Assembly: GCA_023515725.1 (NCBI GenBank) | Contig: JALDTO010000314.1 | Span: forward strand, 1 to 39,898 | DNA length: 39,898 nt | Reading direction: 5' to 3' | Source: Amoeboaphelidium protococcarum X5 | Lineage: Eukaryota > Fungi > Aphelidiomycota | Part shown: piece after piece, positions 23,977 to 31,567 of the stretch | Layout: the number at the start of each line of letters is the position of its first letter | Numbering within the stretch: position 1 is the stretch's first letter | Translations under genes and position numbers: made by a program | Notes under the pieces: generated by a model | The model's database searches: none | What the model was told of the DNA's origin: nothing | Seen by the model: the letters and a program-made list of their open reading frames with translations, nothing else

Positions 23977-26900
23977 TCATAGACTCAGCTCTTTTATTTT
24001 CCTTAAGAGTTTATCGTTCTCCTATACCAGCTTCATATTCTCAACTTTTAAATCGTTATTCTCCTACTTTATCTGCAGATGATACTAGAGCTTTTGCTTT
24101 ACATTGTTATGCTTGACCAGTTTGTCATTCTCCTCTTCCAGCTTTGAATGATGATCAAGCAATTGTTTCAATTTATCACTTAAACTCTACTCGCCATTAG
24201 GCACTGCCTTCAACTAATTGGCCTTATCAATCAGTTGCCCAAATTCTGCCAATTAAGCGCTTTAATTGTCATATTTCTTAATCGTTTCCTAAAGCATCAG
24301 CTCCATCTCATCTAATTTAGTCTTATACTACATCAACTCGTTCTAATGAGACACCCTTAATTCCGATTATTACTTCTAAAGTTCACTGACGCTACCATTC
24401 AAAATAACAATCTAAGAACGCAACTGAGCACAATCAGCGGCTGATTACTCCAACTCTCTGCCTTGCAAACTAAGAGCCTCCTCCTTCAATCTCAATTCAG
24501 ACTACAACTTGTGAAGCTGCTTTGAGTCTGAATCTTTGCTACTGGCTTTAATCAATTCAATGTGTCGATGCAGCTCTCGGTTTTATTACTAAAGTTCATC
24601 AACCTAAGTCTTGTACTGAATAACGCATAATTTCAACTATTCATCGTACTTATGCTGGAGAACTTCAACTTAAGCAGAAAATTAACTCTCGATCTAAGTC
24701 TTTCCATCCACGGCAATCTCTAAATCTTATCTCAGATTATCAATTTCAAAATCTTTCGATTCTAGCTCTATCTACAATTTCTCTACTGCCGCATCTAAAT
24801 ACCTCTCCTTCTCTTGAACTTGCTCCATGACTCTCTACACTGATTCCAACTCATTCTTCAATTACTGAACTTGTTAATCTTTGCTACTCAATTCATCCTG
24901 TGAATTACTTAATTAGCTCTAAAGCTCAGACAATTACCTCTCATACTCAGATTATCGTGAGAGCTGATTAGACTCAAGAGATGTAAGCTATTAGACTAGC
25001 TTCTCCGCCTAGATACGCAACTATTCGTTATCCTCTTTCAATTAATTTTCACGTTCGTTCCATTGTTATTCAGAATTCAAGGCGTCCTTCTGCAATTAAG
25101 AATACTCACTTTTAGTCACAGCGAGTTGATCAAACAGGCCATCATACTCCTTCTACAAGACAGCTTTCTCTTCAGAAACTTGATGATATTTTTATATCAG
25201 ACTTTAAAGCTTTTCCAACAGCTCTGGATGTTGTTAAGTAAGATTCTATTCTGCATCTTATTTCATCAACTTATTCTCTCGTTCCAACTCCAGCAGACGG
25301 TCCGATAGAGCGTACTGAATCTTTTTACTCTCAAATTGCAACTGCTCAACTCTGTTAATTTCAGGCATCACTTGCTCATATCTCTCAACTTCCTACCTCA
25401 GCCTAAGATTATCCGAGGCGAAACGTATCACAGCAGGATTACTCTACAACTCTTGCTTAAGGTGATCAATCTCTTTAATTAATTCAATTTCAACCGAGGA
25501 ATATTAATCAGATTTCAACTTTCCTATTACAGAATCCTTCAACTTTACAATCATTTTTTCATTTTACAATTTACGGTCCAAAGACTCAATCAGTTACTCT
25601 TGTTAAGACAACTACTGCTGTAACTACTCCTTCTCAAGTCTCAATTATCTCTAATCATTCAGAGCCCACTCAGCAATTTAATCATCTCTTCTATCAACAT
25701 CATTACCGCTCTCCAACAAAGAACTATCTTGAACCACTAACTATTACAAAGATGAATGACCAAATTGCTATATTTAGTGACTTTTCAACATTAAAACTTC
25801 ATGCTTCAGCCTGGAAATCTCATCAACCAGTGAAGTTACATCTCCAACAAATTCTTGATTCATAGTCGCAAAACTTTTGATCATCTTTGCTCTATCAGCG
25901 AATCTCAAAGTACTTAAAGTCTCTGCCAAATGCAACTCTTTATCATGACCAACTACACAAGCGACAATACGACACAGAGCATTACCACCCAAGGAATCTT
26001 TAAGCAAAAATGTGAGTTTAGAATCACGATATTGAACAAATTTACTTTTGCGCACACAATTCAATCCACCATCCGACGTATTATCAATCATATTCTAAGT
26101 AGCGTTAGCAGTAGTAGTAGATAAAGAATTGTCGGCCAGTGCATTGATAACATTACCCAGGGCAAGTAGAGACTTATTAATGTTACCAGCCTCTTTCAAT
26201 CTCTAACCAGACGTGTCAGCTTTACCTTGTCTCTCTGAGCCCGCAAGATCAGTGAAATGACATTTACTAACTTTAACATCATACACACCATTGACTAGAA
26301 CCTTACTCTGAACATAGACTGTGAATATAACATGAGATCTACTAGATTCCCGATTGAGCGAAGTTGCAGCAATTTTACGCCTCGATACACCAATGTCAAA
26401 TATACGGAGAGCATCTGCAGCGGTCTGAACCAACTCAATTATTGCCCCTTCCACATATACACCACGCTTTAAATCTTATCTTATTTGGAGTGATTGAGAT
26501 TGCTCATCAGATAATAAATCGTACACTTGTTCATTATAAATTTCAACAAAGGAACATCTAACCTACCAAGTGATACTCTCTCCTTATTCCAGTTACTGCA
26601 CTTACTATTAAATACGTCTGAACAAGTAATCCAGAGACAGAGGAATAATACCAGGATTATCGTCACTTCCCTGCATAGTATAAGTCTTACCAGAAGACGT
26701 TTAGCCATACGCAAATATAGTGGCATTGTAACCATCAAGACAATTATCCAAAAGTGGCCGTGCAATGAAATCGAATACCTCCAGCTGAGACTGATCTGAA
26801 TACCGAGACTGTATCACTTTGTCAAAAGCATATAGTTAATTCTAAATTACCAAGACTGCATTCTAATCTCTAGCCACAGAGCAGAAACCGGTATCATCAT

Positions 26901-26988
26901 CACTCGACTCCACAGGCGGCTTGATTCTCACTAAAACATGAATATTGTCTTTGGCAATCACGCCCTCCACAGACTAACGTGAGAGCAT
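23977..26988 (-). CDS. KIF15: kinesin-12 (KIF15-like) motor with long coiled coil and HMMR-like C-terminal motif (1003 aa)
   Basis: [74 protein letters not shown]; tail [21 protein letters not shown] matches the KIF15/HMMR-type motif. Confidence 0.88.
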
Positions 26989-27463
26989 ATATTAAAAGTA
27001 TTCAGAATCTACTATATCAAATCTGAAAATAAATATGAATGGGTGTAACCTTGATACCAAACGGCGATTAATAGTTTAAAGATCTGTAACAGAAGAGAAA
27101 GAAACCGCGTAAAAAGGAGTTGCTGAAACAGAAACATTTTGGCGCAAACTATTTCACCAACTATTTCTCTTCTCATTCCGTCGTTTCTCTCGCCATGTCT
27201 CTCTGTCTTGTCATACTTTGTTCTTCTTCATAGGGGAGTCTCTCTCTGTGATGTTTCTCATTCTTGGTCGTTCTCTACCTTAAACGCGCGCGCTGTCCTC
27301 ATTACATTCCCTCGCTCATCTCCTTTTCTTTTCCGTTCATCGTCGCTGTGTGTTCTTGTCCTTTGAATTGCTCAGGTGAATTTCATTCTTCTCACGAACT
27401 TAAGAGTAACCCCCGTTCACTTCTTATTACGCGATACGCTTGAGAGTTTACTCCTCTATCAAG

Positions 27464-29356
27464 ATGAACAAGCCGGGCGTGGATAATGATCAATTTTCTG
27501 GTAAAGACAAGTAGTATTCAATACCGTAGCTCCTATCGCTGAATAAGGATGGTGTGAGGAGTTAAAGGTTATACCAGGTACCTCATGACAAGGATGATGA
27601 TAATTAGCATTTGAATAATAATGGTGGTGATGTCAGTCAGTAGTCTTCTGGTAGTTAATTCTCACAGAGTTATCATCATCGTCAGTAGTAGCAATAGTAA
27701 CCATAGTAGTAGTTTTAGCCGTAGTAAGTAGGTGTAGGTAGAATGCGTGGTGGTCCGCCTGGGTTGAAAAAGTTGCCACCTGGATTCAGTGCCGCACCGC
27801 CTGGTATACCGGCACCTGCTCAGCGTCATTTTAGATAGAAGACTGCACCTTAAGCTGGTGAGAGTTCTGCTAATCATTGGCTTCCGTAGTAGCATTAATA
27901 ACAACGCGATGGTGATAATGATGGTTACGGTCTTCAACAAGATTAACATAGATAGTAGCAGTAGTAGTAATAGCCTGACGTTTTTGATATGGAAAAGTTC
28001 AAGGCTGAAATGAGAAAAATGAGTGGGTTGCCTGCTGCACCTTAATCTTCTTACTCTGACGATACACTATAACAGTAATAGCTTGGTACTCAATACCCAC
28101 TATAGGATTAAGCCGTCTAGTTCAATCACGATGATTATGTTAATAGTGTCGAAGATGTTATTTTCCAGTCTGATCTATTGGAATTGCCAGCTGATGAGGC
28201 TGATGGTGAGCAGGTGGGAAATTCAGTTGCACCGGAACAGGGTCTGCGTCAAAGTAGATTTGGTGGAAGATTCTTTAATTTGGATGCCAGTGTCACGACG
28301 GATACCACCTCATCGGCATAGAGTAGTTCTTCTGTCAACTAATAATAACAGTTTGCAGAAGATCAGGGATTGTAAACATCATCGTAACCAGCGTCTGCGG
28401 GTAAGAGAACTCCGCCACCTTCACTAGCATCTACCAAGAGAAAGGGATCTTCTTCTACGTCATCTATTAATGTTCCCACTAGTGTTTTGAAGAGACTTGG
28501 AACTGCGACATCATCGTTATAATCTTCTCCATAACCATCTTCTCCTCTGAAGAGTGTTGGTAAGAAATAGAAGAAGAAGTAGTAGTAGGAATTGTAGTAG
28601 AAAGAGTCTGTATCAGGTTAGTAAGTGGATGCCTCCTCTAAGACTGTCACTTTGTAAGATGGGTAAATGAAAGCGAAAGCTGGTAAATAGTAGGATAACA
28701 ATAATGCAGCAGTGAAATAACCACTAAAAAAGTAGGCGTATGCCAATGAAGGTACTAGATATGTTTAGAAAGATTTTGTGATTAAAGATCTGTAACTGGC
28801 TCAAGAGTTGGATGTTAACAGCAATTTTGTCGTTTAAATGCCGCCACCATTGCCATTGATGCCTGTCATACCTGGACTTCCATCTCCTACTGCATTGCCC
28901 AATGCTCCAGTGCCACCGCCTTTGATTGTTGATGGTCAGCCGGTTCTACCGCCTCCGCCGCACATATTGGCTCTGCTAATCTATTAATCTGGATAGCCTG
29001 TACCTGAGCCATTGCTTCAGTTTCTGTAGCCTCCATTTATTCAGCCGGAGCAGTTGCTTTAGTTTAGACCATCTTTGCCAGTGAGTCCTATAGCCATGAA
29101 CGGACCTGTTGGCTTGTAATAGTAATAGTAGTAGTAGTAGTAGTAGTAGTAATAACCGTCATTGTAGAACTAATCCAATGCTGGGGACTCATCTCCTACT
29201 TTTGGCCAGTAACAGCCAAATAATGAGTCTTCTAATCCATTATAAAAGTGGTTTGGTAATGTGAGTGGCAAGTTACAGAATGCTCCAGTTGATACGAGAG
29301 CTTCCAAGGAGGTGCTGCATGTCGAGGACATTGAATAGTAATAATAGCATCTATGA
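27464..29356 (+). CDS. Gln/Pro-rich disordered protein, candidate eIF4E-transporter (4E-T/EIF4ENIF1)-like translational repressor (630 aa)
   Basis: ATG 27464 to TGA 29354-29356; motifs YSIPQLL (YxxxxL-phi), PPGL/PPGF/PPGI, SRFGGRFF, VPTSVLKRL, LQKWFG, VLHVEDIE. Confidence 0.75.
29117..29155 (+). repeat. (TAR)13 trinucleotide tract encoding poly-Gln
   Basis: taa tag taa (tag)8 taa taa, in frame within the 27464-29356 CDS. Confidence 0.9.
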
Positions 29357-29596
29357 TCTAATATACATTTATTATCTATTATTATTGTATAACCTTACAG
29401 TAATTTAAAGATATTTGGCTTTGATAATACCTTATCTAGTTCAGGTTGATTGATCATTTGTGGAAGGAGTGTACGGCAAAACGACCTTTCCAAAATGTTA
29501 TATTGGAAACTTTATAAATTACGATGTATAGAATCTATTGAATACACTGGAGTTAGTAAAAACATACAAAAATCTTCCTCTGCAACACAGACATCG

Positions 29597-30970
29597 TCAC
29601 ACACTTTGCATCTTCGTCTGACTATTCAATTGTTGTGTAGACCCCGATGATCGCGAATAATCTACTCTCTCGGTAAAAGACACTGGATAAACTCCCTCTT
29701 TCTAAGTGGACGTGTTATATCCTTTAGCCCAGCCATCGTCATACTCGAAGAGTTTAAACACAATGTCACCTTCTTTAAGATCCAGTTCATCAGGCATGCT
29801 GGCGGTGTATGGGAGCGTCACGCGGTACTCATCAAACTTCACACTTATACCCATTCGGTTGGCACTCGTTTGCGATGGACGCCGCCCGAGATTCTTTCGC
29901 TTATTACCGCCAGCGACGAAGGAGTTCACGGAACTATTAGAAATTGAGGATGATGTACTGTTGGCCCTTTTCATATTTCGCTTGTAGTTATTCTTCTAAG
30001 CCCTCTTATGTTTCCGCCTATTACGCACATATCGGTGACCAAAGAACACTGACAGTAAAATTACGGCAGCGGACGCGGCACTTATAATGGGAATGCCCCA
30101 TGTCTGAAAGAGTTGATTATTCGATATTCCAGATCCCGATCCCGATCCGACTCTATCATCAGGAGGCAGCGTGTATTTAAGATTATAGAAATCAAACGAG
30201 CAGGTAGAGTTATCACCATTACACACTCCGCAGTAATCTAATTCACCTCCGCAATCTCGACCAATATTACACGTCGGTCCGTTGAATCCAGAGTCGCATC
30301 GGCATTCAAACTGATTACCTCTTGTCCTGTAGCATCGACCTCTATTATTGCACAGACTGGCACTGCATATCCGAAGATCACATTTACCTTTATAGCAGAC
30401 ACCCAGTTCATTTCCAGATTAAGATGGACCACAAATTACGCCATCACCAACTGTGTTATCAAAATTGTTATTAGGACTGAGGTACTGAGTGAAATCTATG
30501 CACAGATTACTTTACGCTTGACCAAGACAGGCGAGATTACAGGTATTCTCAATATTCTACACAGTCTTGTTGCCTACAGGATCGCATGGTGTAAATGGCC
30601 CAGTGAAAGTCTAATTTCCAATAATGAAATATCTATTGTTAAAATTCGAGCACTGCGACTATCTAGAAATGCATTTTCCATTCTAACAGATTCCTGCATT
30701 GGGACATTATGTGGTAAAGTCTGGCAGATTCTTGCATTTATCTGTACAGCATCCTTCAGACTGCGGAGCACCATAATCACACTCTTCATCGCCCTCTACA
30801 ACGCCATTTCCACACTACTAAGGTGACGCAATCGGCGCCAATTGTTGAGGTTGAGCTTCAATGAGGAGATTAGCGTCGGTTGGTGACGCGTGGGTCATCA
30901 ATGCCCAGCAGAGCACATACATCACCAGTGCATTCCGGAATTTAAATGCTTAGTTGTAGCCAATTATCAT
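29597..30970 (-). CDS. single-pass membrane protein: disintegrin/ADAM-like Cys-rich + EGF ectodomain, cytoplasmic SH3 (457 aa)
   Basis: Signal-like N-terminus (alternative start 30922); CGNGVVEGDEECDYG..CC; VGDGVICG..CYKGKC; EGF CSASLCNNRGRC..CRCDSGFNGPTC; DYCGVCNGDNSTC; TM WGIPIISAASAAVILLSVFFG then RYVRNRRK; SH3 YTASMPDELDLKEGDIV..YDDGWAKG..EGVYP. Confidence 0.88.
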
Positions 30971-31567
30971 CGATAAAATATATAGATATACCCGCAAAGA
31001 ATATTTTATATTGAATAAAAAACGAGTATTAAGGGTATCAAAATTGTTCTTAGTTAAATTGATAAGGGATCTAAGGCACAACGTGACTTGAGCCATCTAA
31101 TTGTACGCGCCTGTAATTAGCCCCTTATCATGGTACTACTCTATTGCCCAATCCACCACTGGATGGATAGTCAGAAAGGATATCGTATTAAAAATAATGC
31201 TTGAACATAAAAAGTTGATCGCAGCGTTTATAACTCTGGAAAGAAATTTTATTTGCATCTAACTGAAACTGAGCAACGTGCTTCAGACCACTTATTATGT
31301 ATTACACCACTATCAGTATGATGCAGACTTGGCCTCTCAATCTTGACTATTCTAAGTGTGATTTCAAAGTTGCAATGCAGTTTACATTAAACAGAATTCT
31401 TTTAACCAAATTGTACATAAACTTTACTGATAGATTCCCTTCATAAGTGAAGCATGAGCATCATCAATTGACAGTATATCAAAAACATAGATCGACCGAA
31501 GTATGTAACGCACTTCATTGATCTCTTCTCTCCCTTGATCAGTAACAACTCTCTTTAAGCGCGCTGA

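Follow-up and report, generated by a model that had tools for sequence, protein, structure and literature searches.

The stretch of DNA analysed here (the window) is the 39,898 nucleotide contig JALDTO010000314.1 (positions 1 to 39,898, forward strand) of the alga-parasitic aphelid Amoeboaphelidium protococcarum X5 (assembly GCA_023515725.1). The subject of this work is a single-exon open reading frame (ORF) at positions 27464–29356 of the plus strand, whose Gln/Pro-rich product carries a series of short linear motifs (SLiMs) and may work like the translational repressor 4E-T (EIF4ENIF1) of animals. The ORF consists of 630 sense codons with TGA as its sole terminator; 86 TAR codons (36 TAA and 50 TAG) lie in frame within it, and its standard-code translation falls into dozens of short fragments. 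The product contains 113 Gln, 63 Pro and 63 Ser residues. A first-pass annotation of the window, made from the letters alone, had proposed such a hidden ORF, and this was borne out: the gene is legible only with TAA and TAG as glutamine, a reading supported by five lines of evidence. Long ORFs ended by TGA alone tile the entire window, and the internal ‘stops’ in Pfam domains elsewhere in the genome (IF4E, LSM14, GYF, PAT1) are solely TAG or TAA. Codon differences at TAR positions between the two genomic copies of the gene comprise 16 exchanges of TAR and CAR and 12 of TAA and TAG, out of 41 in all. In the GenBank protein, 81 of the 86 TAR codons correspond to Q, and UAR has already been reported to encode Gln in A. 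protococcarum (PMC5304391).

Two A. protococcarum proteins in GenBank, both annotated as hypothetical, correspond to the ORF, namely MP228_004791 (P0004; 97.9 % identity) and MP228_000900 (P0001; 94.5 % identity), and the GenBank entry carries no Pfam domain. The genome (G000; 23.6 Mb in 346 contigs) contains a second copy, or homeolog, at G000:C146:791036-792880, with 88 % DNA identity to the window gene. Under the glutamine code, 105 synonymous and 70 non-synonymous changes separate the two genomic copies, corresponding to a ratio of non-synonymous to synonymous substitution rates (dN/dS) of 0.18; the ORF is a genuine gene kept by purifying selection. Among the features listed in the table, those at residues 165–300 lie in the most constrained block (21 synonymous and four non-synonymous changes). 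Residues 421–550 showed 19 synonymous and seven non-synonymous changes, with proportions of changed sites of 0.024 (non-synonymous, pN) and 0.19 (synonymous, pS), and the C-terminal block (residues 586–630) showed seven and zero, whilst pN in the linker regions was 0.09–0.14.

The protein is almost wholly disordered: the AlphaFold2 model had a mean predicted local distance difference test score (pLDDT) of 40 and a predicted template modelling score (pTM) of 0.17, and contained four short helices only, at residues 175–186, 491–500, 507–513 and 579–585 in P0001 numbering, the last of which falls on PLQKWFG. Just two regions had pLDDT above 60. One is FDMEKFKAEMRKM, which is unchanged in four copies; the other, HILALLIYQSGQPVPEPLLQFLQPPF, is the sole segment above 70, lies within the strongly constrained Pro/Leu/Gln block and may resemble residues ~818–850 of human 4E-T, a segment that contributes to localization to processing bodies (P-bodies). 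Since the protein is disordered and has no Pfam match anywhere, a few short constrained segments are likely to be its functional units. Motifs were analysed on the code-6 translation, and a check by position recovered every motif quoted in the first-pass annotation where it had been placed.

Short segments of the 27464–29356 product, with positions in the window (all on the plus strand) and residue numbers of the window ORF
Segment	Position	Residues	Description
YSIPQLL	27515..27535 (+)	18–24	Canonical YxxxxLΦ; candidate eIF4E-binding motif
RLYQVPHD	27566..27589 (+)	35–42	Possible non-canonical lateral-surface eIF4E contact, 11–18 residues past the canonical motif
PPGLKKL-PPGFSAA-PPGI	27755..27808 (+)	98–115	Three PPGΦ; candidate ligands of Smy2/GIGYF-type GYF domains
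FDMEKFKAEMRKM	27983..28021 (+)	174–186	Predicted helix 175–186 (P0001 numbering) with FDx3F start; block pLDDT 61–67
SRFGGRFFNLD	28253..28285 (+)	264–274	Compared with human SRFSRWF (motif III); inside block 165–300
VPTSVLKRL	28472..28498 (+)	337–345	Compared with presumed human PTSVIRKM of the 695–713 segment
HILALLIYQSGQPVPEPLLQFLQPPF	28961..29038 (+)	500–525	Two short predicted helices (491–500 and 507–513, P0001 numbering); block pLDDT 72–74
PLQKWFG...(18 aa)...VLHVEDIE	29237..29335 (+)	592–624	Bipartite; candidate ligand of the LSM14/Scd6 LSm domain
PLQKWFG	29237..29257 (+)	592–598	First half of the bipartite C-terminal motif
VLHVEDIE	29312..29335 (+)	617–624	Second half, followed by QQQQHL and the stop

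The canonical eIF4E-binding motif YxxxxLΦ (Φ, hydrophobic) that had been noted near the N-terminus is present at residue 18, where it would be expected to contact eIF4E. The protein has no second motif of this kind, the form YSIPQ[L/I]LSL is retained in each of the four known copies, and among the long ORFs of the window this one alone has the motif within its first 40 residues. A short distance downstream RLYQ[V/L]PHD is also kept in the four copies, and its position and conservation make it a possible non-canonical eIF4E contact.

The three PPGΦ motifs, PPGL, PPGF and PPGI, start at residues 98, 105 and 112, a seven-residue period, and are unchanged in the four copies. Their units, PPGLKKL, PPGFSAA and PPGIPAP, form an exact heptad repeat. 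Three or more PPGΦ motifs were reached by 26 of 200,000 composition-preserving shuffles. The arrangement suggests that the triplet arose by small tandem duplication and not from three separate origins, and the shuffle P value therefore overstates the independence of the motifs. GYF domains of the Smy2/GIGYF class recognize PPGΦ in which Φ is hydrophobic but not Trp (PMC10187677), and Eap1 is among the known partners of Smy2 (PMC9638028, PMC2377449). An aphelid GYF protein of ~300 aa is encoded at G000:C211:207653-210784 (L009; minus strand, 826–1740). Its C-terminal GYF domain has the Smy2-type signature YKDPQGDIQGPF (YKDPQG), and the protein also has an RGG tract and an N-terminal FYSLDFMYSLF, whose Y-x4-M-Φ pattern is like that of 4E- or 4EHP-binding motifs; it looks like a minimal GIGYF/Smy2. 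The tight cluster in a disordered region and the presence of a Smy2-class GYF gene in the same genome both favour the earlier suggestion that the PPGΦ motifs are GYF-type ligands. This link rests on computed results and the literature.

The middle and C-terminal segments were compared with strings that we take to be those of human 4E-T (SRFSRWF, PTSVIRKM, LAKWFG and VISVDELE), using BLOSUM62 scores, a null model given by the ORF’s own composition and 50,000 shuffles. PTSVLKRL scored 28 against PTSVIRKM (chance of such a score anywhere in the ORF 2e-4; 17 shuffles) and LQKWFG scored 31 against LAKWFG (2.7e-5; one shuffle). VLHVEDIE scored 20 against VISVDELE, for which the chance was 2e-2 in the ORF and 3.5e-5 per site (1,033 shuffles); it lies six residues before the stop, and the match falls within the last 14 residues. 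Counting all frames, the 23.6 Mb genome has 33 occurrences of a KWFG-coding pattern, this gene and its homeolog accounting for two of them. In the SLiM map of human 4E-T, a protein of 985 residues, the canonical motif (Y30–L35) is followed by the PatL1-binding segment 695–713, which also serves P-body localization, and by the LSM14A-binding segment 940–985 (PMC7263148, PMC3950672). The aphelid order, from the eIF4E-binding motif through the PatL1-type to the C-terminal LSM14-type motif, is that of the human map, and KWFG and VEDIE are equivalently spaced from the C-terminus. The claim that 4E-T strings occur in order finds support for PTSVLKRL and for LQKWFG...VLHVEDIE, which match the presumed strings much better than composition would give. 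It fails for SRFGGRFF: the highest-scoring ungapped alignment of SRFSRWF falls at another place in the ORF, so that this similarity, which is at chance level, is no evidence; human motif III itself has no known partner (PMC5291280).

All four types of partner that such motifs would call for (eIF4E, LSM14, PAT1 and a Smy2-type GYF protein) are encoded in the aphelid genome. There are seven eIF4E-family loci, one of them a weak partial match, which probably represent three or four genes in two copies each, and two loci each for LSM14, PAT1 and GYF. The LSM14/Scd6 protein encoded at G000:C200:215648-218884 (L007; minus strand, 1273–2598) has an LSm domain, DFDF, FFD and TFG motifs and C-terminal RGG repeats, a full motif set that supplies the modules with which the animal hub binds DDX6 and LSm ligands. 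The window gene itself stands alone between minus-strand ORFs at 23980–27153 and 29600–31282. Its homeolog (L002) is syntenic with window positions 25964–30856 (L001), an EGF/SH3 receptor-like ORF and a kinesin motor flanking both copies, and the assembly apparently combines two diverged subgenomes or haplotypes. LSM14, GYF and PAT1 are likewise each found as two diverged loci.

We read the protein as a disordered SLiM scaffold, most likely working like animal 4E-T, and give this reading about an even chance. The YSIPQLL helix at the N-terminus would take the dorsal surface of eIF4E and shut out eIF4G, the three PPGΦ motifs would bring in a GYF protein of the Smy2/GIGYF type, and PTSVLKRL and the KWFG...VEDIE pair would dock PAT1 and the LSm domain of LSM14/Scd6, respectively. 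Together, these contacts, each of which we infer from the motifs and the partner genes, would keep capped mRNAs in a repressed, P-body-type messenger ribonucleoprotein.

A bolder form of this reading, put forward in the first-pass annotation, makes the protein a true 4E-T orthologue in Holomycota. The hub of eIF4E, 4E-T, LSM14 and PAT1 would then predate the split between animals and fungi, the ancestral protein would have carried PPGΦ motifs for Smy2/GIGYF, Eap1 would possibly be a diverged descendant and the Cup-homology domain (CHD) would be a later holozoan addition. We hold this only tentatively, and homology to 4E-T is unproven. The N-terminal eIF4E-binding motif, PTSVLKRL, the C-terminal tail and their order speak for a 4E-T-like protein; the profile searches, the CHD, the SRF match and the search for outside relatives do not. 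The literature agrees with the earlier statement that 4E-T is known mainly from animals, describing it as metazoan-specific (PMC8984151), and Eap1 and 4E-T are stated to be non-homologues (PMC3468468); the claim of a Holomycota 4E-T would for these reasons be new. Since reviews hold 4E-T to be metazoan-specific and Eap1 unrelated, the 4E-binding repressors of eukaryotes are seen as having arisen independently many times (PMC3359775).

A body of results weighs against any assignment to 4E-T. Family searches were made first with stop-free pieces and later with P0001, the Pfam thresholds being a gathering score of 28.5 bits for EIF4E-T (PF10477) and a cut-off of 28 bits for Eap1 (PF20566). PF10477 gave no match at E ≤ 10 in P0001, P0004, eight sub-ranges or six stop-free pieces, and hmmscan found no match to PF20566 in the protein or its sub-ranges. 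Neither profile yielded a candidate in the six-frame genome, the control genomes for PF10477 being equally silent. Weak Pfam matches to TFIIF_alpha, Peptidase_S49_N and NAM-associated (E 0.07–7) were set aside as compositional. The 4E-T peptides in the PDB were not retrieved by phmmer with the full protein or with N-terminal, middle and C-terminal fragments; these searches returned just an intein and a lipoprotein at E ~1.

Neither HMMER against 1.84 billion proteins, nor word searches, nor JGI metagenomes yielded relatives beyond Amoeboaphelidium. With residues 220–285 (66 aa, the longest stop-free piece) as query, HMMER covered these representatives exhaustively and returned a single true relative, P0001; bacterial acidic-repeat proteins from the same search (P0002 and P0003) were dismissed as compositional. 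When the whole protein or residues 421–617 served as query, word searches gave two A. protococcarum proteins only, a word search with the 66-aa piece gave one candidate and no match, and an ESM Atlas search with that piece gave nothing. A scan of the JGI metagenomes produced 600 pattern matches, of which none was confirmed.

The CHD, the most conserved feature of 4E-T, Cup and IFET-1, for which the consensus PEWFSAGPTSQSETIELTGFDD is printed in a published supplement (PMC3950672), is also absent. The ORF contains no PEW of the PEW...IEL pattern, more fully PEWF...IEL.GFD, and just two Trp residues (in NHWL and KWFG), which confirms that this DDX6-binding motif, unseen in the first-pass annotation, is missing from the ORF. 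Because a profile match and the CHD were both looked for and neither was found, the aphelid protein is not assigned to the Pfam EIF4E-T family. VEDVIF..LLEL was tried as a compressed CHD and rejected, its linker being ~8 residues short; it is a lead only, as is FDMEKF. DDX6 is bound by FDF, IEL and split FDx4F motifs (PMC6771390). By analogy, the FDx3F of FDMEKFKAEMRKM is, as a lead only, a candidate ligand of the FDF pocket of DDX6/Dhh1, and FDMEKFKAEMRKM could act as a substitute for the absent domain.

The motif evidence has weaknesses of its own. The matches were picked after the sequence had been seen, and a look-elsewhere (Bonferroni) factor of 985 brings the chance values to 0.027 for LAKWFG, 0.2 for PTSVIRKM and 1.0 for VISVDELE. 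The parts SVIRKM, LAKWFG and VISVD of the human strings that we assume are unconfirmed, and a full-text literature search found no paper printing these strings. Primers in the supplement of Kamenska 2014 (PMC3950672) confirm the human sequence KCPHRYTKEEL around Y30, SFTPT at 695–699 and a terminal ELEYRQ before the stop. They also give, with the last residue of each in parentheses, TSMLSP (694), TPFLRP (808), HPQHLP (845), TPQNVP (929) and PASMP (972). In general they agree with the human 4E-T sequence that we assume, apart from one error near residues 967–969. At the N-terminus, a Trp-type non-canonical motif, marked in human 4E-T by the pair W61/W66 (PMC7263148), is absent, there being no Trp in residues 1–140. 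The N-terminal 60 residues were also aligned with four published N-terminal segments (≤36 residues), with Y18, L23 and L24 fixed in the shuffles. The flank of Drosophila 4E-T (RYSKVDLLALRYEG-KSQR vs QYSIPQLLSLNKDGVRSQR) was matched as well by 98 of 5000 shuffles (P ~0.02, or ~0.08 after four tests), and alignments with human 4E-T, Xenopus 4E-T and Cup were not significant, so that similarity around the eIF4E-binding motif is marginal and limited to Drosophila 4E-T.

Many of these results would also follow if the gene encoded a lineage-specific disordered protein, for example a co-regulator of transcription rich in Q and P or a component of condensates, whose likeness to 4E-T consists of post hoc chance matches between low-complexity proteins. 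The protein is an orphan in every sequence search run, the SRF match is at chance level, the flank match is marginal, and two of the three corrected chance values are unremarkable. YxxxxLΦ is common, being found in 10 of the 21 long ORFs of the window and in ~15 % of yeast proteins, and by itself is not diagnostic (PMC7139794). When 7.7 million ESM Atlas clusters were searched with a protein language model, an Ascomycota cluster with Pfam Eap1 ranked second (score 0.82) and an arthropod ‘protein cup’ cluster, with PF10477 in 100 % of its members, third; the scores of 0.81–0.83 did not reach 0.9 and the recognition value, 848, was far under the tool’s mark of 2300, for which reason the ranking is a lead only. 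Nevertheless, both of the named families in the top three are eIF4E-binding repressors, the LAKWFG match keeps its value of 0.027 after correction, and the matches are colinear with the N-terminal eIF4E-binding motif. Moreover, KWFG and the acidic V-x-V-E-D-I-E tail are placed as at the C-terminus of human 4E-T, where ELEYRQ is verified by a primer, and no part of the gene is more strongly constrained than the C-terminal block, which is without a single non-synonymous change. On this balance we consider chance resemblance unlikely, though a serious competitor.

A second alternative accepts binding to eIF4E and denies the kinship: the protein would be an independent adaptor, Eap1-like or a GIGYF client, that joins the Smy2/GIGYF GYF pathway, and its P-body-type motifs would be convergent or non-functional. 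The PPGΦ triplet, statistically the cleanest feature that does not depend on the presumed human strings, agrees with this, as do the reported Smy2–Eap1 interaction, the Smy2/GIGYF type of the aphelid GYF protein, the second rank of the Eap1-containing Atlas cluster and the absence of the CHD. PF20566 is unmatched, however, Eap1 is known from Saccharomycotina only (PMC7139794), and convergence would have to yield three 4E-T-like motifs, ordered alike and with the same terminal position. We consider an independent adaptor less likely still than chance resemblance. A GW182/TNRC6-like protein was rejected, the ORF having only two Trp residues and no GW repeats.

If the protein does prove to be a 4E-T-like scaffold, it would form a concrete bridge between 4E-T and Eap1, combining the motif order of the one with GYF ligands in the style of the other within Holomycota. 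The ancient SLiMs of the P-body hub would then be the contacts to eIF4E, PAT1 and LSM14, and the contacts made through the CHD to DDX6 and to UNR would be animal additions. SLiM scaffolds slip past profile annotation, and this gene, filed in GenBank as ‘hypothetical’ without a Pfam domain, is an example.

Compared with the members of PF10477 (4E-T/EIF4ENIF1, Cup and IFET-1), the aphelid protein is likewise a disordered scaffold with a YxxxxLΦ motif near its N-terminus. It shares with 4E-T basic stretches resembling nuclear localization signals, Q-rich tracts and a Pro/Leu/Gln-rich C-terminal third. It differs from 4E-T in having no Pfam match, CHD, UNR-binding motif I or Trp-based 4E motif, in coming from Holomycota when 4E-T is described as metazoan-specific (PMC8984151), and in its PPGΦ triplet, which is no described feature of 4E-T; it is also shorter than the human protein (630 and 985 aa, respectively). 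If the human strings are as we assume, PTSV[IL][KR][KR][LM] is common to the aphelid protein and the PatL1 segment 695–713, and the tail L-x-KWFG...V-x-x-V-acidic-acidic-[IL]-E is common to it and the LSM14A segment 940–985.

Eap1 of Saccharomyces acts with Dhh1 and in decapping. It is similar to the aphelid protein in size (70 kDa; PMC7139794), and in being disordered and binding eIF4E, a property that the aphelid motif would confer; its partner is a GYF protein, Smy2 (PMC9638028), as is proposed for the aphelid protein. It differs in its PF20566 domain, unmatched by the aphelid protein, and in its restriction to Saccharomycotina (PMC7139794). The PPGΦ-bearing clients of Smy2/GIGYF (TNRC6/GW182, ZNF598, TTP and yeast BBP) resemble the aphelid protein in their clustered PPG[LFI] motifs within a disordered, Q-rich repressor, and ZNF598 carries three PPPPGF motifs (PMC10187677). 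Whereas these clients reach the cap through GIGYF–4EHP, the aphelid protein has an eIF4E-binding motif of its own and would therefore couple eIF4E and the GYF adaptor directly.

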